Shown in pieces: positions 6,057 through 55,344 of a DNA stretch of 64,000 bases. A program made the position numbers and the translations under genes. The stretch lies in the sequence record PP813861.1; one strand, given 5' to 3'. Position 1 is the first letter of the stretch, and each line of letters opens with the position of its first letter. A model generated the notes under the pieces. The model was not told where the DNA came from. It made no database searches and saw only the letters and a program-made list of their open reading frames with translations.

Positions 6057-6078
6057 GCCCTCTCCTTATGGAGAGGGC
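6057..6078 (-). terminator. Intrinsic terminator
   Basis: GCCCTCTCC-TTAT-GGAGAGGGC hairpin. Confidence 0.75.
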
Positions 6079-6085
6079 ATTATAT

Positions 6086-13528: not shown

Positions 13529-18859
<5,331 letters not shown>

Positions 18860-40087: not shown

Positions 40088-40107
40088 CTTACTGAGTATG
40101 TAATGAT

Positions 40108-40258
40108 ATGTAGAAATGATCCCTCCCCCTCGTTTCTACATTAGTCATAATAAATCGGAGCCAGTCCCCCTTCCAACTGGCTCCCAGAGAGTAAAACTCT
40201 TTGCTGGGCATTAATGACGATATATCGCCTCCCTTCGGGGAGGCTTTATATTTTTTTT
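40108..40258 (+). ncRNA. Candidate structured sRNA with two C-rich loops
   Basis: TATGTAGAA motif, three hairpins, UUCG terminator, no ORF. Confidence 0.55.
40227..40244 (+). terminator. Intrinsic terminator
   Basis: GCCTCCC-TTCG-GGGAGGC then TTTATATTTTTTTT. Confidence 0.85.
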
Positions 40259-40312
40259 GTTTTTTACTAGTGTACCTTAAAATATGTATAAATAAAATAG
40301 AGTAATTATAAC

Positions 40313-40765
40313 ATGATCAAAAATGAACTTTTACCAGGGCTAATCTATGCCCAAAAAGAATTTGATAAAATTGCAGCTAATGTAAAAGACTATGATAAGT
40401 ATAAAAGACGCGAAGCTGGTAGGGCAAGTGCCGTTTTAAGAAGTCTAGTGAGCAATATTGTAAATCAGAATAAACCATCCTCACTTGAACATGAAGGCAA
40501 AGTTAGTACTACTAATACTAATGAATATTTAGAAGAAGTTAATAATTACTTCTTTAACATTAATAATATTAAATTAATTTCTCCTAAACTCATAAAAGAG
40601 AAATTAACAATTGATCTAATGAATATTTATGTTAAATGGAATATGATTGGAGTGGCTGGCCGAAATGATGTTCCAATTATTGAACACAGAATTAATGATT
40701 GGTGCGAAGTGACCGATGTCTACATTAATGGTAATAAGATAACTTCTTTACAATGGCCACGTTGA
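40313..40765 (+). CDS. Hypothetical protein (gp302 position)
   Basis: 150-aa ORF. Confidence 0.75.
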   Translation: MIKNELLPGLIYAQKEFDKIAANVKDYDKYKRREAGRASAVLRSLVSNIVNQNKPSSLEHEGKVSTTNTNEYLEEVNNYFFNINNIKLISPKLIKEKLTIDLMNIYVKWNMIGVAGRNDVPIIEHRINDWCEVTDVYINGNKITSLQWPR

Positions 40766-40823
40766 ATTTAAAATAAGTTGTAATAAAATACCTAGCATTA
40801 CATGTTATGTATTGAAGCACAAT

Positions 40824-40908
40824 GCCCGAATGGTGAAATTGGTAAACACAGAAGACTTAAAATCTTCCGGCTACGGTCTTGTCGGTTCGAATCCGACTTC
40901 GGGCACCA
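40824..40908 (+). tRNA. tRNA-Leu(UAA)
   Basis: GCCCGAA/TTCGGGC acceptor, GAAGA-CT-TAA-AA-TCTTC, long variable arm, TTCGAA T-loop, encoded CCA. Confidence 0.95.
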
Positions 40909-40917
40909 ATTTAAATA

Positions 40918-40993
40918 CGGAGTGTAGCGCAGTTGGTAGCGCGCCTGCTTTGGGAGCAGGATGTCGGGAGTTCGAGTCTCCCCACTCCGACCA
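40918..40993 (+). tRNA. tRNA-Pro(UGG)
   Basis: CGGAGTG/CACTCCG acceptor, anticodon TGG at 40951-40953, CCA. Confidence 0.95.
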
Positions 40994-41014
40994 TTTTAAT
41001 AATAGGTAAATAGG

Positions 41015-41308
41015 ATGGATAATAAATGGATATCATGGGAACATCAAATTATAGGAACAGATCTTTACGCTATTCTTAGTGACCCTGAATTAACTAATAT
41101 TCAATTAGCTCAAGGCTTACACTATCTAACAGAAGCAAAGTCTTCTGTATTACATGTTTGTAATAACCATATTACATTCACTGTAACCTATCCACATGGC
41201 ACATTTAGAACCAATGTAATTAGAGAGTGCCCTGCTAGTGATACAAATACATTCAAATGGTCAGGTGTATTAGTCCGTCAAAAAGATGGAACATTCTTAC
41301 CAGAATAA
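41015..41308 (+). CDS. Small hypothetical protein between tRNAs
   Basis: 97-aa ORF. Confidence 0.7.
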   Translation: MDNKWISWEHQIIGTDLYAILSDPELTNIQLAQGLHYLTEAKSSVLHVCNNHITFTVTYPHGTFRTNVIRECPASDTNTFKWSGVLVRQKDGTFLPE

Positions 41309-41315
41309 ATAAAAA

Positions 41316-41392
41316 GGGCCTATAGCTCAGTTGGTTAGAGCAGGCGACTCATAATCGCTTGGTCGCAGGTTCAAGTCCTGCTGGGCCCACCA
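41316..41392 (+). tRNA. tRNA with CAU anticodon, most likely tRNA-Ile2 (lysidine, reads AUA) rather than Met
   Basis: Anticodon arm GGCGACTCATAATCGC as in bacterial ileX; C4:G69 and C5:G68 TilS determinants; no initiator features; CCA. Confidence 0.85.
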
Positions 41393-41399
41393 TATACTA

Positions 41400-41419
41400 G
41401 CCTCCCACTTGGGGGAGGT
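41400..41419 (+). terminator. Terminator after tRNA
   Basis: GCCTCCC-ACTTGG-GGGAGGT-TTTAT. Confidence 0.7.
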
Positions 41420-41444
41420 TTTATACTGTCTCATTGAGGAAAAC

Positions 41445-41666
41445 ATGAATACAGTAATAATGTTGGTATTATCTATCAAAGTTGGATTATTTGGTTTCAT
41501 TTCGACTAATGAAAGTAATATCCTATTTGAAAATAGGGAACAGTGTATTTCTCATCTGGATATTCTGGAACATAAATACAAGTCTCTTGAAGTTATTCGA
41601 AATGAGAATACTCTAAAGATAACCGAAAGAGATAACCATTCTATTTATATTTTTAAATGTCTCTAG
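41445..41666 (+). CDS. Small protein with N-terminal hydrophobic segment
   Basis: Start moved to ATG 41445 after GAGG RBS; MNTVIMLVLSIKVGLFGFI. Confidence 0.7.
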   Translation: MNTVIMLVLSIKVGLFGFISTNESNILFENREQCISHLDILEHKYKSLEVIRNENTLKITERDNHSIYIFKCL

Positions 41667-41962
41667 GAAAATACATGGAACATCAAGAACAAAAAGAACT
41701 ATTGAGACAACCATTACAAACACTTTATAATCTTACTTTTAGTCCCCGTTTACGTAATGGAGCGAAGGCTCCCGATTGGATTCACCTGACCGATGAAGTA
41801 ACCCTATTCCCAAACGGATTAGATATTACAATCAACGCTGTTACACGTTGCATCAAATGGGAACTTATCGGCGAGGATGTAAGTAACATTACTTATGTTG
41901 AAGCTATGTTCTTTAATAAAGGTCTTAAAGCAGTTAAAGCCTATCTCAAACATACGGAGTAA
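41657..41962 (+). CDS. Small hypothetical protein
   Basis: 101-aa ORF; start may be 41675. Confidence 0.7.
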   Translation: MSLGKYMEHQEQKELLRQPLQTLYNLTFSPRLRNGAKAPDWIHLTDEVTLFPNGLDITINAVTRCIKWELIGEDVSNITYVEAMFFNKGLKAVKAYLKHTE

Positions 41963-41964
41963 AT

Positions 41965-42312
41965 ATGGATCATCTAACCCCAACGCAGAGCGCTGTATAT
42001 TTCACATTTATTAGCCCTGAGTTTATAAAGCTAACTCTTGTTGAATCTTTTGTAGCGATCCACAAGAAACATCCAGAAGTAAAGCATTGCGTTAAGAAAA
42101 AGATTAGTGCTAATGAAACGCAGTTTATCTTTATCTTCAAAGATGGGACTGATAATTTAATCATTACACGTAAAACTGAACCTTGCCCTGAACTGGATAG
42201 CCCAGTAGGCGATAGTATTAAGTTGTCCGGCGAAGAACTTAAAAATATTCTTGCTAAGTACGATCGTCCCAAGGATGGTAACTATTTCAAGCACTGGACT
42301 GATCGCCCGTAA
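41965..42312 (+). CDS. Hypothetical protein
   Basis: 115 aa, GGAG RBS. Confidence 0.75.
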   Translation: MDHLTPTQSAVYFTFISPEFIKLTLVESFVAIHKKHPEVKHCVKKKISANETQFIFIFKDGTDNLIITRKTEPCPELDSPVGDSIKLSGEELKNILAKYDRPKDGNYFKHWTDRP

Positions 42313-42327
42313 TAAAATATTACTGGT

Positions 42328-42346
42328 TATGTAATACTATGTAGGA
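42328..42346 (+). promoter_or_regulatory. tRNA promoter-like motif TATGTAAT-nn-TATGTAGGA
   Basis: Directly upstream of tRNA-Asp; same architecture at 40097-40115. Confidence 0.6.
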
Positions 42347-42364
42347 AGTCATGTCCATACGTTT

Positions 42365-42441
42365 GCGCTCATAGTTCAGTTGGTTAGAATACCCGCCTGT
42401 CACGCGGATGGTCAGGGGTTCGAGTCCCCTTGGGCGCGCCA
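42365..42441 (+). tRNA. tRNA-Asp(GUC)
   Basis: GCGCTCA/TGGGCGC acceptor, CT-GTC-AC loop, G73, CCA. Confidence 0.93.
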
Positions 42442-42447
42442 TTTAAT

Positions 42448-42523
<76 letters not shown>

Positions 42524-42529
42524 ATTTCT

Positions 42530-42553
42530 AAAGAGTAGCTTCGGCTACTCTTT
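42530..42553 (+). terminator. Terminator after tRNA-Asn
   Basis: AAAGAGTAGC-TTCG-GCTACTCTTT. Confidence 0.85.
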
Positions 42554-42607
42554 TATGTTGCCATGGGTTATCTTATGAATTAAAATGATTTACTTGAGAG
42601 CACACTC

Positions 42608-43615
42608 ATGTTTGAATTACTATTATCGCCAGATATAGGCGAAGAGTTACCCTTGGTTGGATTTAATGAAATTATTAAATTAGGCGATCTACCTGTGGCA
42701 CTAGCTGGTACTATGTCATATGTGGATGGGAATATACTGTATGTTGGATCTGGACATCATACTGAAGGACAAACAGCCGCAACTGTGTTCAGACGTTTTA
42801 CCATATCACCATTCGCAGATGCAGGTGCAACTGCTACTGGAACATTCTTACCAGGCGTATCCTTAGGATTTGGAACATTACATAAGAATAATTTCATTGT
42901 TTATGGCGGTATTACTGGATGGAACTCGGCTGGTAATGGTGGTACGGGAACATCTAACTTTATACAACATTTTGATATAGCTACAGGCAATAGGGTTGAG
43001 CGATATAGTGGTCCCGTACCACTTTGGGGTACAGCCTCCGCATCAGATGGTAATGATCTTATTCTATGCGTTAACCCAATTGGCGTAAACGCAATGCGAT
43101 TAAAACCATCAAGTAAGTCTTGGCTTAGCGGGCAAGACTATTCAGGTGGTGCTCGTTCAGGTCAACAGTTATTCTTTTATAATGGTTACTTTTACCATTT
43201 TGGTGGTTGGGATAATACAAAGAACATACCTAATCTTGAAGTTTATCGATATAATGCAACTACCTTAATATGGGAGCAAACACCTTGGATGGTTATACCT
43301 GCTGATAAAGGAACAATCTGGCAAGGTAATGGTTATGTAGATGGGGACTATTTTAATTACCTTAACGCTGTTGATGTCGGCGGTGTAACTAAAATGTTTG
43401 CACAACGTTTTAATATTAGGCGCCGGAAATGGGCTGAACCATTTGAACTAGGTATCGGATTCCTTAATATTTCATCTATAGCTAAAGGTCCGGATAATAG
43501 CATGATCATTGTAGGTGGATCTAAAATGCCAGTTGGTGGTAGAGCATATATGTTGAAAAGCCAATTATTAACTGGTATATATCAAGTTAAAGTAGCCCCA
43601 TTAGTTCTCGATTAA
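42608..43615 (+). CDS. Kelch-like beta-propeller protein, probably virion-associated
   Basis: Repeats LYVGSG, FIVYGG, FYHFGG, IIVGG with Y/W spacing. Confidence 0.75.
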   Translation: MFELLLSPDIGEELPLVGFNEIIKLGDLPVALAGTMSYVDGNILYVGSGHHTEGQTAATVFRRFTISPFADAGATATGTFLPGVSLGFGTLHKNNFIVYGGITGWNSAGNGGTGTSNFIQHFDIATGNRVERYSGPVPLWGTASASDGNDLILCVNPIGVNAMRLKPSSKSWLSGQDYSGGARSGQQLFFYNGYFYHFGGWDNTKNIPNLEVYRYNATTLIWEQTPWMVIPADKGTIWQGNGYVDGDYFNYLNAVDVGGVTKMFAQRFNIRRRKWAEPFELGIGFLNISSIAKGPDNSMIIVGGSKMPVGGRAYMLKSQLLTGIYQVKVAPLVLD

Positions 43616-43649
43616 ACTAAAGATAAAAATACTAGTGCGATGATATTAT

Positions 43650-43760
43650 GTAGGATTACTGTATCTAGATAATCCTAAAGCTATCCACTAAATACACTCG
43701 GTGGTAGATTTAATTATAGAGTGTGTCTGAGTGCCAGGGGTTTGCCACCCCTGGCTATAT
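43650..43760 (+). ncRNA. Candidate small RNA: 5' hairpin + H-type pseudoknot + terminator
   Basis: TATGTAGGA motif; stems 43651-58/43670-77, 43681-89/43700-07, 43693-99/43719-25; terminator 43733-55. Confidence 0.5.
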
Positions 43761-43905
43761 TATGTCAATGAGTGTATCTCGTTCTTTATAACCACTATTG
43801 ATATTTAATATAGGTGAAGGGAAGGTGACGAGGCCTTTCCATAGCCGGTATATAACCTAATTTAATAAAGGTTATATACCACATTGTAATAAAGGAACTT
43901 CTATA

Positions 43906-44430
43906 ATGAATAACACAAATCAGTTTGTAAAAACTATTGTTGATTACCAGGCTATCCTGGATGCATTGATATATAAAACTAATGAGAATTGGAATAAGTA
44001 TGGGATGCATTATCATCTTAATGATGTCAGTCATATCACTATACGTGATCATAGAACAGTAGGGTTTTTTATTGGTCGTCAATCTGGTAGTACTACAGCA
44101 TTAATGGAATTTTCAAAACGCTACCCTGGTGAATGTTTGGCAGTATTCACCGACGAAAGAATTCGACGTGGTGCTCAAGATAAACTATCCAAAACACCAG
44201 ATAACATTATTCCATATTTAACTACATTTAAACTACGTAGCTATATCCATAAATCTGGACTATCAACGATCCAGAAAGACTTTAATGAAAATTTACTTTC
44301 AGATATCCGCTATATACTTGTAGATAATGCATCTTATAATCTAAATTTACGAGGTATTACTGATAAAGAATTTAATCAGTGGGTAGCTGATACTTTTGGC
44401 ACTAGTGTGATTGTAGTTCGTTTTAGTTAA
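43906..44430 (+). CDS. Degenerate P-loop protein resembling a terminase ATPase domain
   Basis: GRQSGSTT (Walker A with K to S) and YILVDN (Walker B-like). Confidence 0.55.
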   Translation: MNNTNQFVKTIVDYQAILDALIYKTNENWNKYGMHYHLNDVSHITIRDHRTVGFFIGRQSGSTTALMEFSKRYPGECLAVFTDERIRRGAQDKLSKTPDNIIPYLTTFKLRSYIHKSGLSTIQKDFNENLLSDIRYILVDNASYNLNLRGITDKEFNQWVADTFGTSVIVVRFS

Positions 44431-44450
44431 AATATAAATAGGTAAAATAA

Positions 44451-44473
44451 AAGCCCTCCGTCATGGAGGGCTT
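44451..44473 (+). terminator. Intrinsic terminator
   Basis: AAGCCCTCC-GTCAT-GGAGGGCTT. Confidence 0.8.
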
Positions 44474-44597
44474 TATGTTGTTATGATATGACATTGTTGT
44501 CTAAATAAAATATAGTACGCATATGCGAAGTCATTTTTAATGGCTTTGCATATGTCATTAACTATAAATTATAGTAATTTTTAGAAGAGGTATTTAA

Positions 44598-44756
44598 ATG
44601 TTTGAGGCGTTATTATTTACACCACTTGTTAATTTAAAACCTGTTGTGGATGCTATAGACATATACGAAGGTAGTTTACCACCTTCAGCAAGTTTCCAGG
44701 TTATCGATTTAGATAATACCGTGACTGAACCAGAGGTTATACCGGATGATAATTGA
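44598..44756 (+). CDS. 52-aa acidic protein (MFEALLFTPLVNL...)
   Basis: Manually found; GAGG RBS; overlaps start of next gene. Confidence 0.65.
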   Translation: MFEALLFTPLVNLKPVVDAIDIYEGSLPPSASFQVIDLDNTVTEPEVIPDDN

Positions 44757-45714
44757 ACTTAAATGGCTTGATCCTAATAAAACAAAATATCACTCCACTG
44801 AAATTTATCGAGCCGATTACGAATTCGATAATATTAAAGATGCTGAATTAATTACTACAGTTGGACCAGGGATAACATCTTATCAAGATACAACCGTGGA
44901 ACATAAAAAAACATATTATTATCGCTTTAGATTGATCTATGGATCACAAAAATTTGAAGCATCGGATATGTTCACATTTACAGCTATCCCATACACTGGA
45001 CCTGGTCCAGCTATTTTCCAATTTGGAGATGAACGTTTTGGTTATTTTGGAAAGTTCCCAATGGACTTACCGTCATTACCATCGTTTAATATGGTTCGTG
45101 AAGCATTTAGTTTAGGGCCAATTACAGGTAACTATCTAGAAGTAGCAGAACTTCATAAATTCGCAATAGGTGGTACTGTTAGAGGTACCTTCCCATATCC
45201 ATTGGCAATTGGGTCGGAACTACCAAGAGATAGTGAAATCATGCAAACATTAATTAATGGTGGTGCAATTCCATTAACAATAGGTTTACATGATTGGAAA
45301 ATAATAATACCCTCAGCCGAACATCATAATAATCCAAACCATAATGTGCAGCATTTCCCAGGTGAACTGCGGTCAATGATGGCAGTTATTACAGAGATGT
45401 ATGCTCGTGTTGAAGATGCTGAGACAGGTAACAAAACAGGTGGTAGACTTACATTAAACAGTGGTTTAAATATGTTCTATGACCCATTGAGTGCCAGATT
45501 TCCAGATACCGAAATAAAATATATAATTAGTTCAGATTGGACTGATAATGAATGTACAGCTATTAATTGGACAAGTAGAGATGCAGTATATCCATTAAGA
45601 GCAAAAGAACTACATACCGAAGTAGTTAATGTAGCCACAGATGACGTATGGAATAAAATGCTTATTTGGCCAATTCTAGTTTATACAGGTCTAACTAAAC
45701 CGAAGGAGGTGTAG
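44746..45714 (+). CDS. Fn3-like domain virion-protein paralog 1
   Basis: IYR...SYQDTT...YYYR followed by YTGPGP...GDERFGYFG, typical of phiKZ-like structural paralog family. Confidence 0.7.
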   Translation: MIIELKWLDPNKTKYHSTEIYRADYEFDNIKDAELITTVGPGITSYQDTTVEHKKTYYYRFRLIYGSQKFEASDMFTFTAIPYTGPGPAIFQFGDERFGYFGKFPMDLPSLPSFNMVREAFSLGPITGNYLEVAELHKFAIGGTVRGTFPYPLAIGSELPRDSEIMQTLINGGAIPLTIGLHDWKIIIPSAEHHNNPNHNVQHFPGELRSMMAVITEMYARVEDAETGNKTGGRLTLNSGLNMFYDPLSARFPDTEIKYIISSDWTDNECTAINWTSRDAVYPLRAKELHTEVVNVATDDVWNKMLIWPILVYTGLTKPKEV

Positions 45715-45716
45715 CC

Positions 45717-47663
45717 ATGAGAATTGAATTAACTGACTATAATTCAGATCCATCCACTACTATAAAGATATATCGACATTATTTCCCATTTGATGCAGAA
45801 GATTTGCCGCCCGTGTTAGTTGAATTACCTGGTAATACAAGTAGCTACACCGATGAGACTCTTATACTCAACACCATGGTTTATTACAGGATATCAGTCG
45901 TGCATAATGGCAATGAAGTAGTTGGTCCTTTATACACAACAATGAAACGTTATTATACTGGACCACAAATTGATAAGAATGTCCCAGATAGAATCTTACG
46001 TGGTGATAGTTATATTGGCCGATATGGTACATTACCTTTGAACGTCATATTGTCAATAGATGAAGCTAAAAAATTAGTACCATCATGTACTGTACTTGAA
46101 GGAATCGATCATGAAACAATAGAGGTCGAGAAGTGTAGTTATCATGGGAACGTGTTATTTATTTCTAATATACCTGTTTTCTATGGTAGTCCTGAAGATC
46201 TTTATAATGATGGTGCTCTACTATCATACGGAGACGGATTAGGTGTATTCAGCCGCACATTTTACGATTCTTTAACAACTAAAGTTGAGCAAGGGAAACC
46301 TGTAACGTATAACAATTATTCATTTAAGTTCAGACTGATGACAACAAGCGAGTATGCTGAACTATATGTTAAGTTATATCCAGATTCCCCTATGGGTCTT
46401 ACATGTGATCGAGTTATAGGTAATTGTAACACGCATTCATATAAATCACCAGTCGTAGATATCGGATCACAGGGTAATAAATTCAGAACAGTTGGATTAG
46501 ATGGAGTGTCTTCAGACACAGAGTGGACTACTAAGGGACCACTTTATATGGTGGTCGAGTTAATGAATAGAGGTGATATGGCATGGCCAAGCCCTGATGT
46601 AAATATCATTCCTGCTGATCCAACTGATCGCATGATGTTCTGTCAATCTGAAATTATTAACGGACGTGCCCATTTCTTTGGTGGTGTTTATAGCCATTTT
46701 AATTCATATGCATCTGCCACTACTAAACATATCAGTATTAATTTGGATGGATCTGATAGGCAAGTACATGCGGATATGCCAGTTGGGGTATATAACGCAT
46801 GTACTTGGGTTAACGGGAATAAAATCTACTGTATGGGCGGCGCCAAAAAGATAGGCAGTAGCGAATATACGTATGCTGAATTATACAATGACATTCAGGT
46901 ATGGGAGGATGATGGTACGCCAGAAGGTTCTTGGTCAACTATAACGAATAGTTTACAATTTTATTATGGTGCTAGTGTTACGAAGTATTATGATAAAATC
47001 ACTGATCGTCAAAGACTTTTATATATTGGCGGGTATGGTAATGTAATTCCTTCCGGACAGTATAATTTTGCAACAGCGGATCTGGATACATTTGACGGTA
47101 CATTTACAGTCTATAATCGGTCTAATTTCTACGACGGTGGCGGCGGTCCAATAGCACCACATGAAGATTATTTCTTATGGGTTGCTCCAGAAAGAAGTAC
47201 TAATGGTTTTACAAATGCGACATATAAATTAACTATACCTGAAGACACTGACTCGTATACATATAGAACCAAGATAACTCAACAAGGTACAGAATTACCA
47301 ACCACCAAAGGTGGTAAAATTCATATTTGGCGAGATACTATCTTCATGTATGGCTCGGCATCTCTTGATGAGAAACAAGGTGAGTTATACTTATATCAAT
47401 TTGTACCTAATGAAAACCGCTGGTTGAAAATAACCGTAGCGGTACCAGGATTAAGTAATAGCAGTAGAGCATCTTTAAATGGAGCGTTTTACGAAGATAA
47501 GCTCGTGCTTATGCATAATCAACCTTGGCTTAATGAATCGTTTACATCAAGTTTCTATGTTATTCGATTAATCGATCCAATCGATGCACCAATCATCCCA
47601 GTCACAGATGTACAAGTTGGCACAAGTCGGATATTTACAACTTATGCTGAGGTTTCGATATGA
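45717..47663 (+). CDS. Fn3-like + Kelch propeller virion-protein paralog 2
   Basis: N-terminal IYR...SYTDET...VYYR, YTGP...GDSYIGRYG; C-terminal HFFGG, YCMGG, LYIGG, FMYG repeats. Confidence 0.75.
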   Translation: MRIELTDYNSDPSTTIKIYRHYFPFDAEDLPPVLVELPGNTSSYTDETLILNTMVYYRISVVHNGNEVVGPLYTTMKRYYTGPQIDKNVPDRILRGDSYIGRYGTLPLNVILSIDEAKKLVPSCTVLEGIDHETIEVEKCSYHGNVLFISNIPVFYGSPEDLYNDGALLSYGDGLGVFSRTFYDSLTTKVEQGKPVTYNNYSFKFRLMTTSEYAELYVKLYPDSPMGLTCDRVIGNCNTHSYKSPVVDIGSQGNKFRTVGLDGVSSDTEWTTKGPLYMVVELMNRGDMAWPSPDVNIIPADPTDRMMFCQSEIINGRAHFFGGVYSHFNSYASATTKHISINLDGSDRQVHADMPVGVYNACTWVNGNKIYCMGGAKKIGSSEYTYAELYNDIQVWEDDGTPEGSWSTITNSLQFYYGASVTKYYDKITDRQRLLYIGGYGNVIPSGQYNFATADLDTFDGTFTVYNRSNFYDGGGGPIAPHEDYFLWVAPERSTNGFTNATYKLTIPEDTDSYTYRTKITQQGTELPTTKGGKIHIWRDTIFMYGSASLDEKQGELYLYQFVPNENRWLKITVAVPGLSNSSRASLNGAFYEDKLVLMHNQPWLNESFTSSFYVIRLIDPIDAPIIPVTDVQVGTSRIFTTYAEVSI

Positions 47664-48514
47664 TTACCTTTAAAATTAGGAATCCTAATTCTAGATCAAT
47701 TACAAGTATTGAAGTATACCGCGAGTTATCAGGTACACCTATTCCGGATACTCCTATAAACCAACCAATCCAGAAACTAGACGGATTCACGACAGCTATT
47801 ATTGATCGTGATGTGGTAATTGGTAATGTTTACGATTATCGCATTAGGACTGTAAGAGAAGGCGGCGACACAGCCATTAGTCCAGTATTTACATTTAAAG
47901 CTGTTTCGCAATATGGACCAGGTGGTTTCTTAGAACCTATGATGCAAGCAGATGGAGCTGCATTGTTAGATAGGGTAACTAGTCCGGAGCTTCCTAGTCT
48001 TCAAGATCTATTAATGATGTTTAATGGGCAATCGGAAAATGCCATAAATTGGACTGATCAATGGACAAAAATTAAACATAAATCAGATATTTACTTTCTC
48101 CCATATATGGGTTATATCGAGATACCGATAGACAAATTATCTGAGCTAATTAATAATGTAGATAATAATAGAACTATAGTTAAAGGTAATTGTAAATATT
48201 CTTTTTATGTCCCATCATTGCCAACTTCGTTCTATATGCAAGTTATGGATGGTCGGTTTGTTGGACCATATACACTACCAGCTGATTACCCTAGAAAATC
48301 AATGATCCGGTCAATTAGTGATCAGGTTAATAAAAATGCAGATGATGTCAGGGTAATTATGACTGTAGTAGGTGCGAATTCAACTAGAGCATTTAAGGAT
48401 CTGAGTAAGTATGGGTCATCAACCATTACCACTTTTAACCCAACTATTGATGCTAATGTTAGTTGGTATTGGAAACCCATATTAAATTTTATCCAAGAAT
48501 CAGGAGTAAATTAA
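47660..48514 (+). CDS. Fn3-like domain virion-protein paralog 3
   Basis: VYR...IIDRD...VYDYR, QYGPGG; ATGA overlap. Confidence 0.7.
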   Translation: MITFKIRNPNSRSITSIEVYRELSGTPIPDTPINQPIQKLDGFTTAIIDRDVVIGNVYDYRIRTVREGGDTAISPVFTFKAVSQYGPGGFLEPMMQADGAALLDRVTSPELPSLQDLLMMFNGQSENAINWTDQWTKIKHKSDIYFLPYMGYIEIPIDKLSELINNVDNNRTIVKGNCKYSFYVPSLPTSFYMQVMDGRFVGPYTLPADYPRKSMIRSISDQVNKNADDVRVIMTVVGANSTRAFKDLSKYGSSTITTFNPTIDANVSWYWKPILNFIQESGVN

Positions 48515-49374
48515 TGTACATCACTCTTAAAAATGTTAGAGGTTGGCCTGGTTCTACACCGATCGTTACATTTTGGTCGTATACCAATGCGATACCTTGG
48601 GATTACAATAACCTACCACCCCACTATTACTATGATTGGGATTTAATAGCAGGATTCTGGCCATCCAGATACCCTGAAGATACATGCGTTTGGTTGAACT
48701 TAAAATATAAGGATATATTTGGTCAATTAGCTTATACAGGACCAATGCGTACTCTTAGTGTAAGTAGTAAATGGCAAAGTGTATTGGGATATACAAAGCT
48801 TGAAGCCGGTGATGGACAATATGCCAGGTTGACAAAGTCATACAAAGGTGAAAATAGACCAACCCTTAGACCAATTGGTTCTTCGCCATATAGCATCCCA
48901 GGAATGAATCTTGATGAGGCTCCAACCCCTTATTTTATTGATAATGAGTATGTAGCTTTTCATGATACATCTAGTATTGAGAAAGCTGTCGCTGTGGCTG
49001 TTTACCATGCGGGGTACATGGGACGGTCTGGAGATATGTCCGATGTATGGCCGAGTGAATTGATAGAACATATAGGTGGTCCAACTCAACAAGGACGTAT
49101 AATAGATATGCAGGACGTTAAGTGGGAGGTATATGTTCCAACATTAAACGAATTCAAGCGTTATATGGGTACAGCTTTTCAGACAGGCATCCAAACAGAC
49201 CAGTCCCCGGTAACTAATTTATCACTGCCAGATAATGTAAAGTTCCTCACATCAACACCATCTCCAAGAAATAATACCATGTTAGTTGCTATCGATAACG
49301 ATGGTATTGAATATGATGTTGACATAGCTAATGAAGTTGATGTGATTTTTGTATTTAGACCTATACTAAAATAA
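48514..49374 (+). CDS. Divergent paralog 4 of the same family
   Basis: TAATG overlap fixes start at 48514; YTGP...AGDGQY motif; C-terminal FVFRPIL like paralogs 1 and 3. Confidence 0.65.
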   Translation: MYITLKNVRGWPGSTPIVTFWSYTNAIPWDYNNLPPHYYYDWDLIAGFWPSRYPEDTCVWLNLKYKDIFGQLAYTGPMRTLSVSSKWQSVLGYTKLEAGDGQYARLTKSYKGENRPTLRPIGSSPYSIPGMNLDEAPTPYFIDNEYVAFHDTSSIEKAVAVAVYHAGYMGRSGDMSDVWPSELIEHIGGPTQQGRIIDMQDVKWEVYVPTLNEFKRYMGTAFQTGIQTDQSPVTNLSLPDNVKFLTSTPSPRNNTMLVAIDNDGIEYDVDIANEVDVIFVFRPILK

Positions 49375-49388
49375 CTTTATACGGCATA

Positions 49389-49412
49389 AGACCCCTCTAT
49401 ATAGAGGGGTCT
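49389..49412. terminator. Perfect 24-bp palindromic terminator
   Basis: AGACCCCTCTAT/ATAGAGGGGTCT. Confidence 0.75.
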
Positions 49413-49523
49413 ATTTATAAGTAAAAATATACATAAAGTCATTATTATTTGTAGGTTAACCCTACATATAACTCAACTAGAAACCGGGCGTTAATAAAAT
49501 TTAACACTACGGAAAACATAAAG

Positions 49524-50066
49524 GTGACTCAAATGGCTTTTCATTTTAATACACTAGATCTAGACGACTTTATTAATAATTCAAATAAAGTATTAAAAAT
49601 AAATGTTGGCAAGCAAACATTAGTAGCTTATGATGTTGATAAACTAAATATTGTTAATTCAGCTATTAATAAACTAGTTTATAGCGACCCTATAAGTGAA
49701 GAACATATCGAAGCATCACTGACAGATGATTCATTAAAAGAGCTTAATAATTATCTACTTAATAATGGCATTCAGAATAGCGCCAAGATGATGATTGATG
49801 CTGCTCTAGAAATCAAAGAATATTATAAAAATTACGATTCTTTTAGGCCATGTATTTATAAATTAAAATCAATGCATACCAAAAATACAGATGATGTGTA
49901 TCTAATATTTATTCTCGGTGAATCGGACAAGTTATTTGATACTATGCAAGGTTATATTGTTAATAAGTCAGGTAATCTAATCAGAACTACTGTTCAGTCA
50001 TGGCGATTCGAGAAAATTGAATTCAATGACTTAGTTGAATATGATAAGCGTTGGTTATTTATTTAA
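49524..50066 (+). CDS. Hypothetical protein
   Basis: 180-aa ORF; start may be ATG 49533. Confidence 0.75.
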   Translation: MTQMAFHFNTLDLDDFINNSNKVLKINVGKQTLVAYDVDKLNIVNSAINKLVYSDPISEEHIEASLTDDSLKELNNYLLNNGIQNSAKMMIDAALEIKEYYKNYDSFRPCIYKLKSMHTKNTDDVYLIFILGESDKLFDTMQGYIVNKSGNLIRTTVQSWRFEKIEFNDLVEYDKRWLFI

Positions 50067-50117
50067 TATTAAATAAATAAAATAATACTTCCATATACAC
50101 TATATGTAGAAGATTTC

Positions 50118-50194
50118 GCCGCTATAGCTCAGCTAGGTAGAGCAACGCACTTGTAATGCGTAGGTCCTCCGTTCGATTCGGAGTGGCGGCACCA
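50118..50194 (+). tRNA. tRNA-Thr(UGU)
   Basis: GCCGCTA/TGGCGGC acceptor, CT-TGT-AA loop, CCA; TATGTAGAA upstream. Confidence 0.95.
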
Positions 50195-50272
50195 AATTTA
50201 CTGAGGTTTAAACTATTCTTAAATATATTAGTTAGGATGGGATTGAACGCGAAAGACTCAGTAAATCATATT

Positions 50273-50292
50273 GCCCCTCCATATGGAGGGGC
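50273..50292 (+). terminator. Intrinsic terminator
   Basis: GCCCCTCC-ATAT-GGAGGGGC. Confidence 0.8.
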
Positions 50293-50323
50293 TTATGTTT
50301 GTCATTAATCAGGAAAGTATAAA

Positions 50324-50500
50324 ATGAGTCATCTATTATTTATCATCCAAGAATATATTACTAATAAATTTGAGATAACACGAATTGATATGAAGCCATG
50401 CAATAGAATGTTACGTGTATGTTTATACGGTCAACATGAGGGAAAAGGTTTCGTCCGTGTAGATTTATGGTCAGTTGGTTATCGTATTACAAAGAAATAA
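50324..50500 (+). CDS. 58-aa hypothetical protein (MSHLLFIIQEYITNKF...)
   Basis: Manually found; AGGA RBS. Confidence 0.65.
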   Translation: MSHLLFIIQEYITNKFEITRIDMKPCNRMLRVCLYGQHEGKGFVRVDLWSVGYRITKK

Positions 50501-50542
50501 TACTCCAGATTATTTAATATGTATTAATCAAAGGAGTTTATA

Positions 50543-50953
50543 ATGAGTAATGAAACTAACTATCTAGGTTATGAATGGAAAACAGATATAACTACTTCAA
50601 ATCTTAATAGAGTAGTTGATTTATATACACTTGAATTAGCATGGTTAAAAGAAGATTTTAATGATACTCTTTTTATAAAGTCTTATAAAGTACTAGAGGG
50701 TTTATTAGAAGAACCATCTAGGGCAATCCATGATGATACAATGTCCATTCAAAATCAATTAGATGAATTAAATACTGTTTTTAAATTAGTATTTGGGAAA
50801 GATAATGATGTAGAGTTATCAATTAATAATGATTCAATTATTGTAATTGGCACCACAGACGCAACTAAAGAAAAGTTAGAAGTAGAGGTGCGTGAGTTTA
50901 CATATAGAAAATCATTAATTGATGAACGTTATCCAGACATTGTAACGGATTAA
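50543..50953 (+). CDS. Hypothetical protein
   Basis: 136 aa, AAGGAG RBS. Confidence 0.8.
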   Translation: MSNETNYLGYEWKTDITTSNLNRVVDLYTLELAWLKEDFNDTLFIKSYKVLEGLLEEPSRAIHDDTMSIQNQLDELNTVFKLVFGKDNDVELSINNDSIIVIGTTDATKEKLEVEVREFTYRKSLIDERYPDIVTD

Positions 50954-51033
50954 AATACTTACAGCTATCTAGTATGTAACTAGGCGGATTGCCATTTGTA
51001 AATTATCTATTTAATAAAACTGAGGAAATACTA

Positions 51034-51423
51034 ATGAAACAATTCTTTCAACTGCTTCTAAGCCTACTTTTCAAACTACCAGTTCTATCATATTTTGCTG
51101 AGAAGAAACGATTAGAGAAAGAGAAAAAGGAAGAAGAAAAGCGTCAGCAAGAACAACGTCAAAAAGAACTACTTGATGAACAACGTCGCGAACAAGAAGA
51201 TCATTATCGAAAGACGGCTTACGATCGCCTAGCTAAACTTATTCATACTCGGTGGTATGATGAGTTTAATGCATACGAAAAGAAACTAGTTGATCTTGCC
51301 GTGTCGACTGGTAAAGCAGTTAGTGTTAAGTATGGTAAAGTTACTAAGATGCAACACCCTCAACAATTTAAACTACTTAATGATTGGCTGGATGATATTC
51401 CAGTAGAAGATTATTCTAAGTGA
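51034..51423 (+). CDS. Protein with N-terminal hydrophobic helix and charged coiled coil
   Basis: Start moved to ATG 51034 after GAGG; MKQFFQLLLSLLFKLPVLSYF then EKEKKEEEKRQQEQRQ. Confidence 0.8.
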   Translation: MKQFFQLLLSLLFKLPVLSYFAEKKRLEKEKKEEEKRQQEQRQKELLDEQRREQEDHYRKTAYDRLAKLIHTRWYDEFNAYEKKLVDLAVSTGKAVSVKYGKVTKMQHPQQFKLLNDWLDDIPVEDYSK

Positions 51424-51450
51424 GTTTAAATAAAAGAAAATAAAGACATA

Positions 51451-51474
51451 GCCCCTCTCCATGTGGAGAGGGGT
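51451..51474. terminator. Bidirectional terminator between convergent blocks
   Basis: CCCCTCTCC-ATGT-GGAGAGGGG. Confidence 0.8.
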
Positions 51475-51485
51475 TTATGCCGTAA

Positions 51486-52166
51486 TTATACACTTACTTT
51501 GATAAGATTTTTAATATCAGTAAAATGGGTATATGTTGCCTTTTTATCTTTGTGAACCAGTAAGCAACAGGTACCTTCATTTACTGTATTGGTTTGTTTT
51601 AATGGGATATTTAAAGCATATTCAAACAGATCATCCATCCAGTTAAATACCATGAACTTATTGATAAGGACATGATCGAAATCAATTAATCCAATAAACG
51701 AATCGATCTCAGATTGATAATACTCTACAACCATTTTAGACCATTCTTTGTTTATCGCCTCAATGACATTAGGATTATTTATTTTATTAAATAACTCAAT
51801 ACGTTCCTGAGTAGGTAAACTGAGGTAATAATTAATATTACTCCTAACGATATCTGGATTAGTGATATCCATTTTTTCTGGTAAGTTATATTTACTATCT
51901 ACATAATTCTTAGTTTCTGGTGTCATTCTCCAGCAACCATAATCAGCAGTAGTACTTGATGGATCTATTTTAGTCTCCACTACTTTAGAAAATACATCTA
52001 CATATAAATTAACAGATTCGTATACATCAGGTCTGATTGGATTAAAGTTTAAACTTTTAATAAGACCCCTAACTGGCCGAGTACCAATTAGACAATGCAA
52101 TTCAAGCTTAACATTTTCCTCTTTAGCCATCTTAAATATATCAGCAAAACTGAGCTTTTCTGCCAT
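51486..52166 (-). CDS. Hypothetical protein
   Basis: 226-aa ORF. Confidence 0.8.
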   Translation of the reverse strand: MAEKLSFADIFKMAKEENVKLELHCLIGTRPVRGLIKSLNFNPIRPDVYESVNLYVDVFSKVVETKIDPSSTTADYGCWRMTPETKNYVDSKYNLPEKMDITNPDIVRSNINYYLSLPTQERIELFNKINNPNVIEAINKEWSKMVVEYYQSEIDSFIGLIDFDHVLINKFMVFNWMDDLFEYALNIPLKQTNTVNEGTCCLLVHKDKKATYTHFTDIKNLIKVSV

Positions 52167-52316
52167 TTAGAATATACCTTTTATTAATTGGACAAATAGA
52201 TTAGATACACATAGCAATAGAATAAACCATAAACCTAGTCTTTGTAATTTATCTATACGCTTAGCTTTTTGTTTCCTCTTTAATCTAACTAATAATGTAT
52301 TTTTAATATCATTCAT
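52167..52316 (-). CDS. 49-aa basic protein with C-terminal TM helix
   Basis: Manually found; TAA-ATG junction with next gene; RLKRKQKAKR then LGLWFILLLCVSNLFVQLI. Confidence 0.7.
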   Translation of the reverse strand: MNDIKNTLLVRLKRKQKAKRIDKLQRLGLWFILLLCVSNLFVQLIKGIF

Positions 52317-52334
52317 TAAATTATCTCAGATTTT

Positions 52335-52865
52335 TTAGACGGTGTATAAACCCTCAGTATTACATGTTGTTATGATATTGTAAAGACGATGCCAATAGCG
52401 ATCATACGTATTTTTACGTTTGTAGCTATTGGTGCGGATGACTAGATTGGCGACCCAGTGATTCTGATCAATGGTCTCATGTAGATGCCCGAAATAAGCC
52501 CCCAGTTCAATTTCGAATGGGATCTTACACTCACGCCCCTTACACATTGCTTCACGCAATAAACGCATTGCAGAATTCTCTGCATTGGTATCTTTAAATA
52601 AAAGACTAATGTATCCAGGGCTACCACCAGTTTCTTCATCAACATGGCCTGAACAGCAATAAATAGTTGCAACATTGATAAATTGATTAAACCATTTAAT
52701 TAATGGCCTACATGCTTCATCAATAAGATCTTCATATTCAGGTTTATACATTACTTTAACAGTATCATCTGCACGTTGTTTCACATGATGAAAATATTGC
52801 TCCCAATTTACATTAGTGTAATATAGCATATCCATATTAGAATTACTCATACAAATCAACCCCAT
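52335..52865 (-). CDS. TYW3/Taw3-like protein (possible RNA methyltransferase fold)
   Basis: IDEACRPLIKWFNQFINVATIYCCSGH resembles TYW3 motif D-x2-I-x2-L-x3-N-x6-T-x2-SCSG-R/H. Confidence 0.4.
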   Translation of the reverse strand: MGLICMSNSNMDMLYYTNVNWEQYFHHVKQRADDTVKVMYKPEYEDLIDEACRPLIKWFNQFINVATIYCCSGHVDEETGGSPGYISLLFKDTNAENSAMRLLREAMCKGRECKIPFEIELGAYFGHLHETIDQNHWVANLVIRTNSYKRKNTYDRYWHRLYNIITTCNTEGLYTV

Positions 52866-53587
52866 ATGTTATTGGCATATTCGCGGTCATTGAAAATGCG
52901 GGTAAGATCCATCCGCTTTTGAATGCGCGCTAGTATCCATTTTAGTTGTTTAGTTGATAGTTCTTGATTTTGCTTGTACTCACCTGTAGCATGGATGTAA
53001 TAATCAAATTTACGACTTACAGTAGTAGTATGTGCACATGCAATAGCAAATGCTTCAAGTGCAGTTAGTTTGGTTGATCCATTATCATTACAATTAGGGA
53101 TAAACTCAAGTACACTATTAACTGCATCTACACCACTACCCAAATGAGCCCAATCTTTCTTGGTGATGTTGATACCCATGTCTTTAAGAATAACTGTATA
53201 TATGTCACCATTCTCCATAGTGAACATCATAGAAGTATTACCATTAAACAACCTGCGTTCTATGACTGGCAAGATATTTACTTCAACTTTAAACCAATCA
53301 GCTAAATCAACACCTGCGGTAAGGGCATTCAATAGATCATAAACATTATCTATAGTTCCAGCAAAAGCCATAGTTTTAACACGTTTACCTTGCCAAGTAA
53401 CTGTCGGATGAAAAATTATCTTGTGGCAATCATTGTAATATACATCTACACCTTCAGCTTTAGCAGTTAGATCAATATAACCGTTATCTAATACTGGAAG
53501 TCGCCCAATGCTATCAGTTGCATTATTCCGCTCAATTAATAGGCAGTCTGCAATCATGACTTTACCATCATTTACGATATATGTCAT
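52856..53587 (-). CDS. HslV/proteasome-beta-like Ntn-hydrolase
   Basis: After AAGGAG RBS starts M-TYIV...MIAD (N-terminal Thr nucleophile); K in DCHK, FAGT, HLGSG motifs. Confidence 0.6.
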   Translation of the reverse strand: MTYIVNDGKVMIADCLLIERNNATDSIGRLPVLDNGYIDLTAKAEGVDVYYNDCHKIIFHPTVTWQGKRVKTMAFAGTIDNVYDLLNALTAGVDLADWFKVEVNILPVIERRLFNGNTSMMFTMENGDIYTVILKDMGINITKKDWAHLGSGVDAVNSVLEFIPNCNDNGSTKLTALEAFAIACAHTTTVSRKFDYYIHATGEYKQNQELSTKQLKWILARIQKRMDLTRIFNDREYANNIWG

Positions 53588-53621
53588 TTTCACTCCTTAT
53601 AATAAAATAAATAGGCTTAAG

Positions 53622-53745
53622 CGAAATAAAGCCCTCCCCGAAGGGAGGGCATTATCAATAGGTGGGATCTCGGCGGCACCTTCATTTGCGGACGGGAACG
53701 CTGAAGGGAGATAGTCCGGGAGATCCCGATTTGGGTATTCTTTAC
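53622..53745 (-). ncRNA. Candidate GC-rich structured small RNA with nested pseudoknot
   Basis: TATGTAAAG start motif; stems GGGATCTC/GAGATCCC, CGGAC/GTCCG, CCTTCA/TGAAGG; terminator 53631-53650. Confidence 0.5.
53631..53650 (-). terminator. Intrinsic terminator
   Basis: GCCCTCCC-CGAA-GGGAGGGC. Confidence 0.8.
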
Positions 53746-53753
53746 ATATGGTA

Positions 53754-54134
53754 TTACTGCAAGTATTTGTTCCCCGCAGTATAATCACCATTGATCCAAT
53801 TTTTGATTACAACACTGATCCCTTCATTTTCTTTAACGGTAACCCCCAACTCAAGATCGATTGATTGATAAGCTACAGCCGCCAGTGTTAACCGAAGATA
53901 AACGGATCCATCTTTTTCGATATCGTAGGATACTACGAACCCGTCTTGTAGATTTTGTAGCTGGAATGTATTAGCATGTTGTGGGTGGAGACGATCCATA
54001 TTGTACTCGACGACATCTAGTAGATATTGCCGAGCATCAGCAGCATTATCAAATCCGAGATCGCACAGACCGATCGGATAGCGAGCTTGCGTGCATGTAA
54101 CTTTCATAGATACTACACGATGTTGTTTGCACAT
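53754..54134 (-). CDS. Hypothetical protein
   Basis: 126 aa, GAGG RBS. Confidence 0.8.
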   Translation of the reverse strand: MCKQHRVVSMKVTCTQARYPIGLCDLGFDNAADARQYLLDVVEYNMDRLHPQHANTFQLQNLQDGFVVSYDIEKDGSVYLRLTLAAVAYQSIDLELGVTVKENEGISVVIKNWINGDYTAGNKYLQ

Positions 54135-54154
54135 TATATTTTCCTCTTAGATGT

Positions 54155-54246
54155 CAAAAACCCTCCCCGATCAGGGGAGGGTATCTCATTGGTACTTCTT
54201 CAGCAAAACTGAAACTAAGATAAAAGAGCAATCGTAAAGGAACTAC
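54155..54246 (-). ncRNA. Candidate ~90-nt U-rich small RNA
   Basis: TATGTAG motif, internal hairpin, terminator 54160-54182 with U-tract on minus strand; no ORF. Confidence 0.35.
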
Positions 54247-54275
54247 ATAGAATAGTGTATTTCTTTTACTATTTT

Positions 54276-54689
54276 TTACACAACCTCTTTAGATGGGGGT
54301 TCTTTATGAATCCAGTCTAAAGTTGTTGGTAAACTATTATCTGATCTGAAGGTACACACCGTCCGGAACCGAGAGTGATCAACTACAGATAATTGCCCGT
54401 TAATCGCAGCCTCATATTGCCTACACAACTTCACACACCTTTTCTCTAGATCAGTTGGTTCGTAACCTTCTTCTCTTGGTTCAGTGTATGGTCCATCCCA
54501 AAAGAATATTAATCTAAGATCAATCCCAGATTTATACTCCGCTTGGTATGAATATTGATGAACATCAAAATCATCTAATTCTTCAACTAGATGTGATGTT
54601 ATTGTTCTAGGGTGTTCATGAGTTAATTCACTGTATATATGTTTATTTCTAGGGTTTTGTAAATCAACTACGATAAGTTGACTAGTCAT
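54276..54689 (-). CDS. Hypothetical protein (MTSQLIVVDLQ...)
   Basis: Start moved to ATG 54689, adjacent to upstream stop. Confidence 0.75.
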   Translation of the reverse strand: MTSQLIVVDLQNPRNKHIYSELTHEHPRTITSHLVEELDDFDVHQYSYQAEYKSGIDLRLIFFWDGPYTEPREEGYEPTDLEKRCVKLCRQYEAAINGQLSVVDHSRFRTVCTFRSDNSLPTTLDWIHKEPPSKEVV

Positions 54690-54690
54690 T

Positions 54691-55344
54691 TTAACTTTTA
54701 TCCAGATGTCTATTACGAGTGCGTTCCACTGCTGTAGGTTCGACAGTGGCTCGCGGTAGATAAGTAATCTCCGGGAAAGTCTTATTAAGAGCATCTTCAA
54801 TTAGCTCTTTAGCAATCTCTGCATCGATGTAATGGTTTAGAATAATACCACGATGATACAGGAAGAAGCTGTATTCATCATAACCATGGCGAAGACTTAC
54901 TTTACCACGATACCCACCATAGGTTAGAGTATCTTCGTTAATTTCATTCCGATAAATATCAAGTTGGATATTATTTTGAAGATGCATTTGAATGAAGTCA
55001 TTACCATCGCCACCAAATAGGGTTGGTCGTTTCCGCCCGGTAACAACATCTTGGATGGAATCCATTAGTCGGTTAATGTCTGTTTCTAATCGTTGGATAT
55101 CACATTGAGAATTCATTGCTTCATGAAAACGAGTTACAACTGCATTAAATTCTTCTTCAGTCCAACCGCTGGTACGTTTTTCATAATCAACAATGATAAT
55201 ACCGAACCAGGCATAACCGTTAGAATGTTTTACTTTAACACATAGATGAGGTACATTATCAGCACCTGACTGATGGTTAACAGTGTAATTATTATTACGG
55301 CTGATTACTAGTTTGATAAAAGGTAGACTAATGATTGACGCCAT
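54691..55344 (-). CDS. Hypothetical protein
   Basis: 217 aa, AAGGAA RBS. Confidence 0.8.
   Translation of the reverse strand: MASIISLPFIKLVISRNNNYTVNHQSGADNVPHLCVKVKHSNGYAWFGIIIVDYEKRTSGWTEEEFNAVVTRFHEAMNSQCDIQRLETDINRLMDSIQDVVTGRKRPTLFGGDGNDFIQMHLQNNIQLDIYRNEINEDTLTYGGYRGKVSLRHGYDEYSFFLYHRGIILNHYIDAEIAKELIEDALNKTFPEITYLPRATVEPTAVERTRNRHLDKS

Follow-up and report, generated by a model that had tools for sequence, protein, structure and literature searches.

Middle-class promoters and candidate short leader RNAs in the tRNA region of a phiKZ-like jumbo phage of Pseudomonas

The non-virion RNA polymerase (nvRNAP) of Pseudomonas phage phiKZ requires the sequence 5'-TATG-3' and initiates at its G, and the middle promoters of this phage carry an additional upstream box, AAanTTACc (PMC4666361). 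Differential RNA sequencing (dRNA-seq) places a TACT motif, with A's before it, about 22 nt upstream of the start, and includes two tRNA starts in this class (PMC8244752); structural data on promoter use by nvRNAP are also available (PMC12809450). Seventeen phiKZ non-coding RNA (ncRNA) candidates derived from 5' untranslated regions (5'UTRs) have been listed (Table S7 of Putzeys et al. 2024, Microlife uqae002). Similarly, in 201phi2-1, also a nucleus-forming jumbo phage, short RNAs arise from 5'UTR terminators by premature termination, one of them directly upstream of a tRNA, and tRNA-Leu is made from a middle promoter (Microb Biotechnol 2024, e70037). Here we analyse a window of 64,000 nucleotides from Pseudomonas phage vB_PaeM_FBPa36 (PP813861, Phikzvirus; record position = window position + 62000), and in particular the promoters and short transcription units that lie among its tRNA genes. 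To our knowledge, only a small number of non-coding RNAs have been described in phages, and scarcely any has been given a function. Nucleus-forming jumbo phages are, moreover, being considered for use in phage therapy.

The block in question holds the tRNA genes and middle genes of a nucleus-forming jumbo phage related to phiKZ. Over 40000-44700 the window matches FBPa36 at 100% identity and many other Phikzvirus genomes at 97-98%, and the plus strand of the window equals the phiKZ minus strand at about 262-274 kb. An earlier note on this stretch had proposed that a tRNA-type promoter motif, TATGTA(G), also drives five short units without an open reading frame (ORF), and that these are dedicated small RNA (sRNA) genes, protected at the 5' end, co-regulated with the tRNAs and missed by annotation. 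We refer to the units as 1 (40107, plus strand), 3 (43647, plus), 4 (49468, minus), 5 (53748, minus) and 6 (54249, minus). The observation is largely real and mostly already known, since both the transcripts and the promoter type have been described in phiKZ; reading of the sequence alone thus recovered transcripts whose definition had required Cappable-seq and northern blots. Modestly new are a rule for TA at positions +2/+3, a predictive bipartite promoter pattern and the conservation of the structure of a 141-nt RNA across genera. The explanation that we favour as a whole, with a probability of about 80%, is that the units are middle-promoter transcripts that partly terminate early as short leader RNAs and partly read through.

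Four of the 17 phiKZ candidates are orthologues of units 1, 3, 5 and 6, at the same position, with the same TATG start and the same terminator. We accepted a unit as a candidate when it was orthologous to a transcript whose mapped start and termination sites lie <250 nt apart, and four of the five units are of this kind. Unit 1 (window 40111-40252) corresponds with 97% identity to phiKZ 274148-274007(-), a 141-nt RNA upstream of PHIKZ302 that is validated by northern blot. For unit 3 (43650-43761) the counterpart is phiKZ 270595-270485(-), 110 nt upstream of PHIKZ297, supported by both northern blot and gradient profiling (Grad-seq) and 89% identical over the 3' 92 nt. Units 5 (53744-53624) and 6 (54245-54156) are each 100% identical to their counterparts, phiKZ 263172-263292(+), 120 nt upstream of PHIKZ289, and phiKZ 262671-262760(+), 89 nt upstream of PHIKZ288, for neither of which is a validation listed. 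The discrete RNAs that the earlier note had called for are therefore on record in phiKZ for four of the five units, with mapped 3' ends, two with northern blots and one also with Grad-seq. The 141-nt RNA is abundant and arises from premature termination, full-length read-through also being seen (uqae002). By Grad-seq, a ∼100-nt RNA from the PHIKZ298/297 intergenic region, present at 10 min, sediments away from ribosomes (PMC8545117, Gerovac et al. 2021).

In FBPa36, the unit 1 RNA would be about 143 nt long (40110..40252, plus strand). Its promoter (40084..40113) has a TACT box at 40090-40093, TATGTAAT at 40097-40104 and TATGTAG at 40107-40113, with +1 at the G at 40110; the phiKZ orthologue is P144 (start site 274148), classed as late in the source. 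A second promoter, TATGTAT (40283..40289, plus; +1 about 40286), lies just 3' of the unit 1 terminator and drives the PHIKZ302 homologue (40313-40765, plus); its counterpart is P143, late. Unit 3 begins at an AATACT-N13-TATGTAG promoter (+1 43650; unit and promoter 43628..43761, plus; P138, middle) that follows the PHIKZ298 homologue (42608-43615, plus), and its RNA of about 112 nt, known in phiKZ as 5'UTR_PHIKZ297 and equally as 3'UTR_PHIKZ298, would end at the terminator. The unit 5 leader, of about 121 nt, starts on the minus strand at 53745, from AATACT-N13-TATGTAA (53624..53767; P130, middle), and its terminator is directly ahead of the PHIKZ289 homologue (52856-53593, minus). The unit 6 leader, of about 90 nt, likewise starts on the minus strand, at 54246 (TATGTAG, 54156..54249; P129, early by motif in the source), and its terminator is directly ahead of the PHIKZ288 homologue (53754-54134, minus).

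The intrinsic terminators described earlier hold good in units 1, 3, 5 and 6, each of which ends in a G+C-rich hairpin and a U-tract (hairpins at 40227-40244, 43733-43755, 53650-53631 on the minus strand and about 54181-54159 on the minus strand, respectively), and do not hold in unit 4. The idea of closed, dedicated genes fares worse: all four phiKZ units read through to the downstream gene or genes, three of them having no other promoter before the ORF. Transcripts from P144 continue into PHIKZ302 and the entire tRNA operon, those from P129 extend into PHIKZ288, and those from P130 into PHIKZ289 (uqae002 preprint supplement). As for having escaped annotation, this is true of GenBank, where the record gives only hypothetical proteins and six tRNAs in the region (ARAGORN finds the same six tRNAs and nothing else), and untrue of the literature, where the four units are already listed. 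The predicted folds of the units are stable (z-scores of -3.1 to -7.4), and an Rfam scan of 39500-55000 at E <= 1 matches only the six tRNAs and nothing over the units. In a check by eye, none has a conserved ORF with a Shine-Dalgarno sequence: unit 3 lacks an AUG, and the short ORFs of units 5 and 6 lack a Shine-Dalgarno sequence. Structure is kept in relatives, as had been predicted, with compensatory changes in unit 1 (eight phages) and unit 3 (four sequences).

According to the favoured explanation, nvRNAP would initiate at the G of TATG, with the TACY box at a distance of 13 nt and TA following. At 90-140 nt past the start of units 1, 3, 5 and 6 it would reach the intrinsic terminator, where most transcripts would end, building up as short RNAs with a terminator hairpin at the 3' end and, in three cases, a further hairpin at the 5' end. 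Some would continue past it and yield the mRNA or tRNA precursor encoded downstream, so that the terminator would act as a valve setting the level of transcription of the downstream gene. Published experiments in phiKZ have shown that transcription starts at TATG, that 3' ends fall at the hairpins, that one start gives two lengths of transcript, and that two of the RNAs are abundant; the same transcripts are probably made in FBPa36. Units 5 and 6, and probably unit 3, appear to be mainly cis leaders that set read-through, because in each an ORF follows the terminator without a second promoter. Unit 1 probably works as an RNA in its own right, given that it has its own promoter and terminator, that a second promoter comes after it, and that its fold and loops are conserved though the downstream gene differs. 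Nucleus-forming phages (chimalliviruses) transcribe inside a phage nucleus that is free of ribosomes, making attenuation coupled to ribosomes an unlikely mechanism.

Several points count against this view. The transcripts of FBPa36 rest on orthology to phiKZ, with 77-100% identity around the starts, and the precision of a start in Oxford Nanopore cappable sequencing (ONT-cappable-seq), the source of the mapped phiKZ starts, is only ∼2 nt. The promoter classes of the source table are motif-based predictions, in which P144 is labelled late and P129 early. Units 5 and 6 are nearly invariant among Phikzvirus genomes and give no covariation support for their structures. The covariation samples comprise eight sequences for unit 1 and four for unit 3, and the number of unit 1 pairs changed on both sides, five, is not significant alone (44/500 shuffles reach it). 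Finally, the division into cis leaders and trans-acting RNA is an inference of ours. In the literature we found no paper assigning a function to these RNAs.

The promoter that starts these transcripts is better defined. TATGTA(G) is the start-site half of the phiKZ middle-class nvRNAP promoter, AAAnTACY-N13-TATG(+1)TA, of which there are eight between 40090 and 53767: three for tRNAs, two for mRNAs and three for short structured leaders. These resemble the middle and late nvRNAP promoters described in phiKZ (Ceyssens 2014; Yakunina 2015; Wicke 2021) in having TATG with +1 at the G and an A-rich TACT/TTACC box ∼20 nt upstream, and in serving both tRNAs and middle genes. The published accounts hold nothing to be conserved 3' of TATG, whereas here TA at +2/+3 marks the box class. 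The role given to TATG in the earlier note, that of an nvRNAP motif overlapping the start, agrees with published biochemistry, in which G is +1 (PMC4666361). The label 'tRNA-type' does not survive: middle-class starts are mapped at tRNAs, mRNAs and short units, and the motif is therefore a general middle promoter rather than a signal for tRNAs. The same promoter serves mRNAs, among them those of PHIKZ292 and PHIKZ293, and TATGTAG is found in the model late promoter P119L as well (cTATGTAGaca).

To examine the bases after TATG, we entered 139 mapped phiKZ starts from the published ONT-cappable-seq supplement (bioRxiv 10.1101/2023.10.13.562163, preprint of Microlife uqae002), using a phiKZ genome assembled from the phage collection; the position and sequence columns of the PDF-derived Table S3 are one row out at about P040-P048, and classes were re-derived from the genome sequence. 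TA is present at +2/+3 in 20 of the 59 TATG-anchored non-early starts, compared with 9% of background TATG (p = 1e-7), and TAG at +2 to +4 in 8 of the 59, compared with 1.9% (p = 1.6e-5). TA at +2/+3 is a property of the box-containing middle class (15/26 box-class versus 9/42 late-like phiKZ starts, p = 0.004), whose consensus from phiKZ starts is AaAaattacT-N13-TATGTA. The extension of TATG to TATGTAG is real, but predictive only together with the upstream box. Mapped starts account for 10 of the 12 TACY-N13-TATGTA sites in the phiKZ genome, 10 of 50 TATGTAG sites and 64 of 2630 TATG sites. The TACY-N13-TATGTA rule could help to mark out middle promoters, the promoters of tRNAs, and leader RNAs in the many Phikzvirus genomes that lack annotation.

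Sequence checks of the window found every motif listed in the earlier note in its place: TATGTAGGA at 42338(+), 24 nt ahead of tRNA-Asp, and at 43647(+) in unit 3; TATGTAGAA at 50103(+), 12 nt ahead of tRNA-Thr, and at 40107(+) in unit 1; TATGTAGGG at 49468(-) in unit 4; TATGTAAAG at 53748(-) in unit 5; and TATGTAGTT at 54249(-) in unit 6. TATGTAG is not enriched over the whole window, with 20 copies against 14.7 expected, a number reached by 13/100 shuffles. Seven of the 20 copies are intergenic, intergenic sequence making up 9.2% of bases (p = 0.0015), and 13 fall within 15 kb, 39236-54249 (p = 9e-5). TATGTA is intergenic in 21 of 71 copies (p = 1e-6), the top share among 60 hexamers of the same composition. 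For A[AT]TACY-N13-TATG there are 7 matches in the window versus 1.64 expected (0/100 shuffles reach 7), all intergenic and between 40787 and 53767. TATG is present at all seven sites listed above, and six of them align within 2 nt with mapped phiKZ starts, those at the orthologues of 40107, 42338, 43647, 50103, 53748 and 54249. The TACY box stands at N13 spacing at five (40107, 42338, 43647, 50103 and 53748) and at three further sites; at 54249(-) and 49468(-) it is not found at that spacing.

Apart from the units, the promoters of the tRNA genes are as follows, all on the plus strand. AATACC-N13-TATGTAT (+1 40809; P141, middle) precedes tRNA-Leu (40824-40908) and tRNA-Pro (40918-40993), the whole spanning 40787..40993. 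ATTACT-N13-TATGTAG (+1 42341; P140, middle), with TATGTAAT at 42328, precedes tRNA-Asp (42365-42441), tRNA-Asn (42448-42523) and a terminator (42530-42556), spanning 42319..42556. AATACT-N13-TATGTAG (+1 50106; P134, middle) precedes tRNA-Thr (50118-50194), spanning 50084..50194. Two further bipartite middle promoters (50499..50978) start the mRNAs of the PHIKZ293 and PHIKZ292 homologues, at 50521 (P133) and 50976 (P132), respectively. The tandem arrangement TATGTAAT-nn-TATGTAG is exact at both 40097 and 42328, as reported. This upstream TATGTAAT may belong to a -10-like element and not mark a second start, because GTAAT recurs in several middle promoters, being found at about -11 to -7 in P140, P137, P027, P130 and the unit 1 promoter (e.g. 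40100-40104, 42331-42335).

Turning to the rival explanations, the one that survives best is that of the earlier note, in which the units are dedicated, self-contained genes for trans-acting sRNAs, protected by 5' hairpins and forming one TATGTAG regulon with the tRNAs. Taken as a whole we consider it unlikely, though parts of it are well founded. Unit 1 does have its own promoter and terminator and is followed by another promoter; northern blots show the counterparts of units 1 and 3 as abundant, discrete RNAs, that of unit 3 sediments apart from ribosomes in phiKZ, and the tRNA promoters do have a middle-type motif in common with units 1, 3 and 5. A regulon is harder to maintain. The mRNAs use the same promoter type, and the 17 ncRNA candidates of phiKZ include only 6 with a TATGTA start, too few for the motif to define the ncRNA set of the phage. 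(Six of the 17 have orthologues in the window. Besides the four units these are the 5'UTRs of PHIKZ029 and PHIKZ034, at 13703-13842(-) and 6053-6183(-), which are 100% and 97.7% identical to phiKZ; neither starts at TATGTA.) Nor are the units self-contained, given that four of them read through and that units 3, 5 and 6 hold the sole promoter of the downstream ORF. In addition, dRNA-seq at 10 min detected the tRNA promoters and not those of the four units.

The 5' hairpins bear on the same question. All three that had been described appear in the minimum-energy folds. Units 1, 3 and 6 and the mRNA of the PHIKZ294 homologue open with a hairpin at +1 or +2; unit 5 has none, which argues against dedicated, 5'-protected genes. 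In favour of such genes, compensatory changes preserve the pairing of the 5' hairpin in both unit 1 and unit 3. In unit 1 a G-C pair is replaced by A-U in phiKZ, T2P and 124.01; in unit 3 the 5' hairpin region has diverged from phiKZ, the sequence of the stem differing between two groups of phages with the pairing kept. It is well known that 5' stem-loops stabilise transcripts, as in the E. coli ompA leader and T7 late transcripts, and the four RNAs above that open with a hairpin are comparable. Unlike what would be expected of a general feature, there is no genome-wide enrichment of hairpins at phiKZ starts. We scanned for hairpins by offset around the 139 mapped starts, with 499 non-start TATG and 618 non-start TGTAG sites as controls. 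A hairpin of <= -4 kcal/mol starting at +1 to +3 was found at 13/59 mapped phiKZ starts and at 109/499 non-start TATG sites (p = 0.54), and at G-UAG starts the same test gave 5/15 versus 24% of controls (p = 0.28). Hairpins being no commoner at mapped starts than at control TATG sites, 5' protection cannot be upheld as a feature of the class, and we reject the notion that nvRNAP transcripts generally carry a 5' hairpin, or that such a hairpin is the still unexplained downstream determinant of the promoter.

Unit 1 consists of a 5' hairpin (40110-40139), a hairpin 2 with an invariant CCCUUCCA loop (40157-40184), a hairpin 3 (40185-40203) and the terminator (40219-40252), and its fold has a z-score of -7.4. 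Besides Phikzvirus, homologues are found in PS119XW and HPP-Temi (Pawinskivirus), PA1C and phiPA3 (Miltoncavirus), in every case heading the tRNA cluster, with the gp303 homologue immediately upstream. The gene that follows varies, being PHIKZ302, tRNA-Leu or phiPA3 gene 374. In Pawinskivirus and PA1C the homologue abuts the upstream side of tRNA-Leu with no PHIKZ302 homologue between, and contains an extra insert of ∼47 nt (PS119XW L008 1523-1702, PA1C L014 529-708, HPP-Temi L016 529-710). All of these homologues (Pawinskivirus, PA1C, phiPA3) retain the promoter box and the tandem TATGTAATGnTATGTAG. The exception is phiKZ, in which, unlike FBPa36, the TACY box and upstream TATGTAAT of the unit 1 promoter have been lost.

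An alignment of the eight sequences shows three helices and the terminator, with 96.8% of cells paired. Covariation scores 0.246, compared with 0.157 for shuffled alignments (0/500 reach it) and 0.04-0.12 when the partners are slid. The CCCUUCCA loop is invariant across the eight phages, which belong to at least three genera (Phikzvirus, Pawinskivirus, Miltoncavirus) plus PA1C, and the loops of unit 1 are C-rich and conserved, a point in favour of a trans-acting RNA. We tentatively propose that unit 1 is the first member of a family of conserved, structured RNAs in nucleus-forming jumbo phages of P. aeruginosa, acting through its C-rich loops on an RNA or protein partner and not as the leader of a particular gene, while judging this proposal somewhat more likely to be wrong than right. 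The complement of the loop, TGGAAGGG, occurs 3 times in phiKZ versus 3.7 expected, and never at a start codon or ribosome-binding site of the phage, which speaks against a trans-acting sRNA directed at such sites. Because it is conserved across genera, the 141-nt RNA is the best candidate for functional study.

The reach of the family was explored with a covariance model, which detected no copy within the terminal 20 kb of 201phi2-1 (tRNA-Leu included), a point of difference from that phage, and no paralogue in the window, the partial matches there being terminators. A scan of IMG/VR with the hairpin 2 pattern returned only phiPA3 and PA7, known isolates; a single metagenome match to this pattern failed the covariance model and was set aside as chance. 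In FBPa36, a 32-codon ORF without a Shine-Dalgarno sequence (40116-40214, plus) opens 6 nt after the unit 1 start, and some GenBank records put hypothetical proteins over the unit 1 spacer. The ORF is not conserved, because its AUG at 40116 is AUA in phiKZ, T2P and 124.01, a change that restores pairing in the 5' hairpin. On the strength of this lost start codon we rejected unit 1 as a small-protein gene.

Alternatively, the short RNAs could be functionless by-products of a compact layout in which the promoter of a gene lies upstream of the terminator of the previous gene. For unit 3 this has some appeal: T126, the end of this unit, also terminates the PHIKZ298 mRNA (TU216), and Grad-seq first took the orthologue for a 3'UTR product (PMC8545117). 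Moreover, ∼25% of published phage transcription units hold no gene (uqae002), and the terminator parts of the units recur throughout the genome. The view does not extend easily to unit 1, whose body keeps three helices and the invariant loop in eight phages of three named genera plus PA1C. The separate promoter that follows unit 1 also tells against it, since the unit 1 promoter is therefore not needed for the downstream gene. Lastly, unit 6 is 100% identical between phages that are ∼10% different elsewhere. On balance we hold the by-product view to be unlikely, slightly less probable than that of dedicated sRNA genes. With respect to unit 6, the stretch that comprises it and its promoter (54135-54290) is 100% identical between FBPa36 and T2P, whose identity over the tRNA region is only ∼90%; this suggests either strong constraint or recent exchange.

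It is improbable that the leaders are riboswitch-like elements in which a sensed ligand or protein switches termination and read-through: one start does give two strict modes, short or full-length (uqae002), and in units 1 and 5 a large structured domain precedes the terminator, yet only tRNAs match Rfam at E <= 1, and we saw no obvious antiterminator pairing and recognised no ligand-binding fold.

Unit 4 stands apart. No phiKZ start is mapped at 49465(-), and the mapped start of this place, P136 (middle), lies on the plus strand, where a TTTG(+1)TAGG start (49448..49465, +1 49451) gives the mRNA of the PHIKZ294 homologue. RNAs of less than about 80 nt can escape the published phiKZ pipeline (uqae002), so the missing start is not proof of absence. 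The hairpin after 49468(-) has its T-tail on the plus strand only, where it terminates the upstream plus-strand gene, the tail on the minus strand being UAUGCCG. The GUAGG/CCUAC hairpin reads the same on both strands and is the 5' end of the plus-strand PHIKZ294-homologue mRNA; in phiKZ, SL2 and 124.01 it shows a double change from G-C to A-U, and the minus-strand TATGTAG there is TATGTGTAG. Overall the evidence favours the plus-strand reading of the element at 49448-49465, and unit 4 (49468 to about 49385, minus), being the reverse complement of this start element and the terminator of the upstream gene, is not supported. The terminator hairpins at 44450-44474, 49390-49413 and 50273-50292 are close to palindromic. 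Two of the three receive a terminator score on either strand, so that sequence alone allows such hairpins to be placed on one strand or the other.

Between units 3 and 4, the window carries at 44598-49374 a plus-strand gene block common to T2P and SL2, annotated in SL2 as virion structural proteins. In phiKZ and 124.01 its place is taken by PHIKZ296 (an HNH endonuclease), a second tRNA-Asn and small ORFs. The block is a mosaic junction within the tRNA region.

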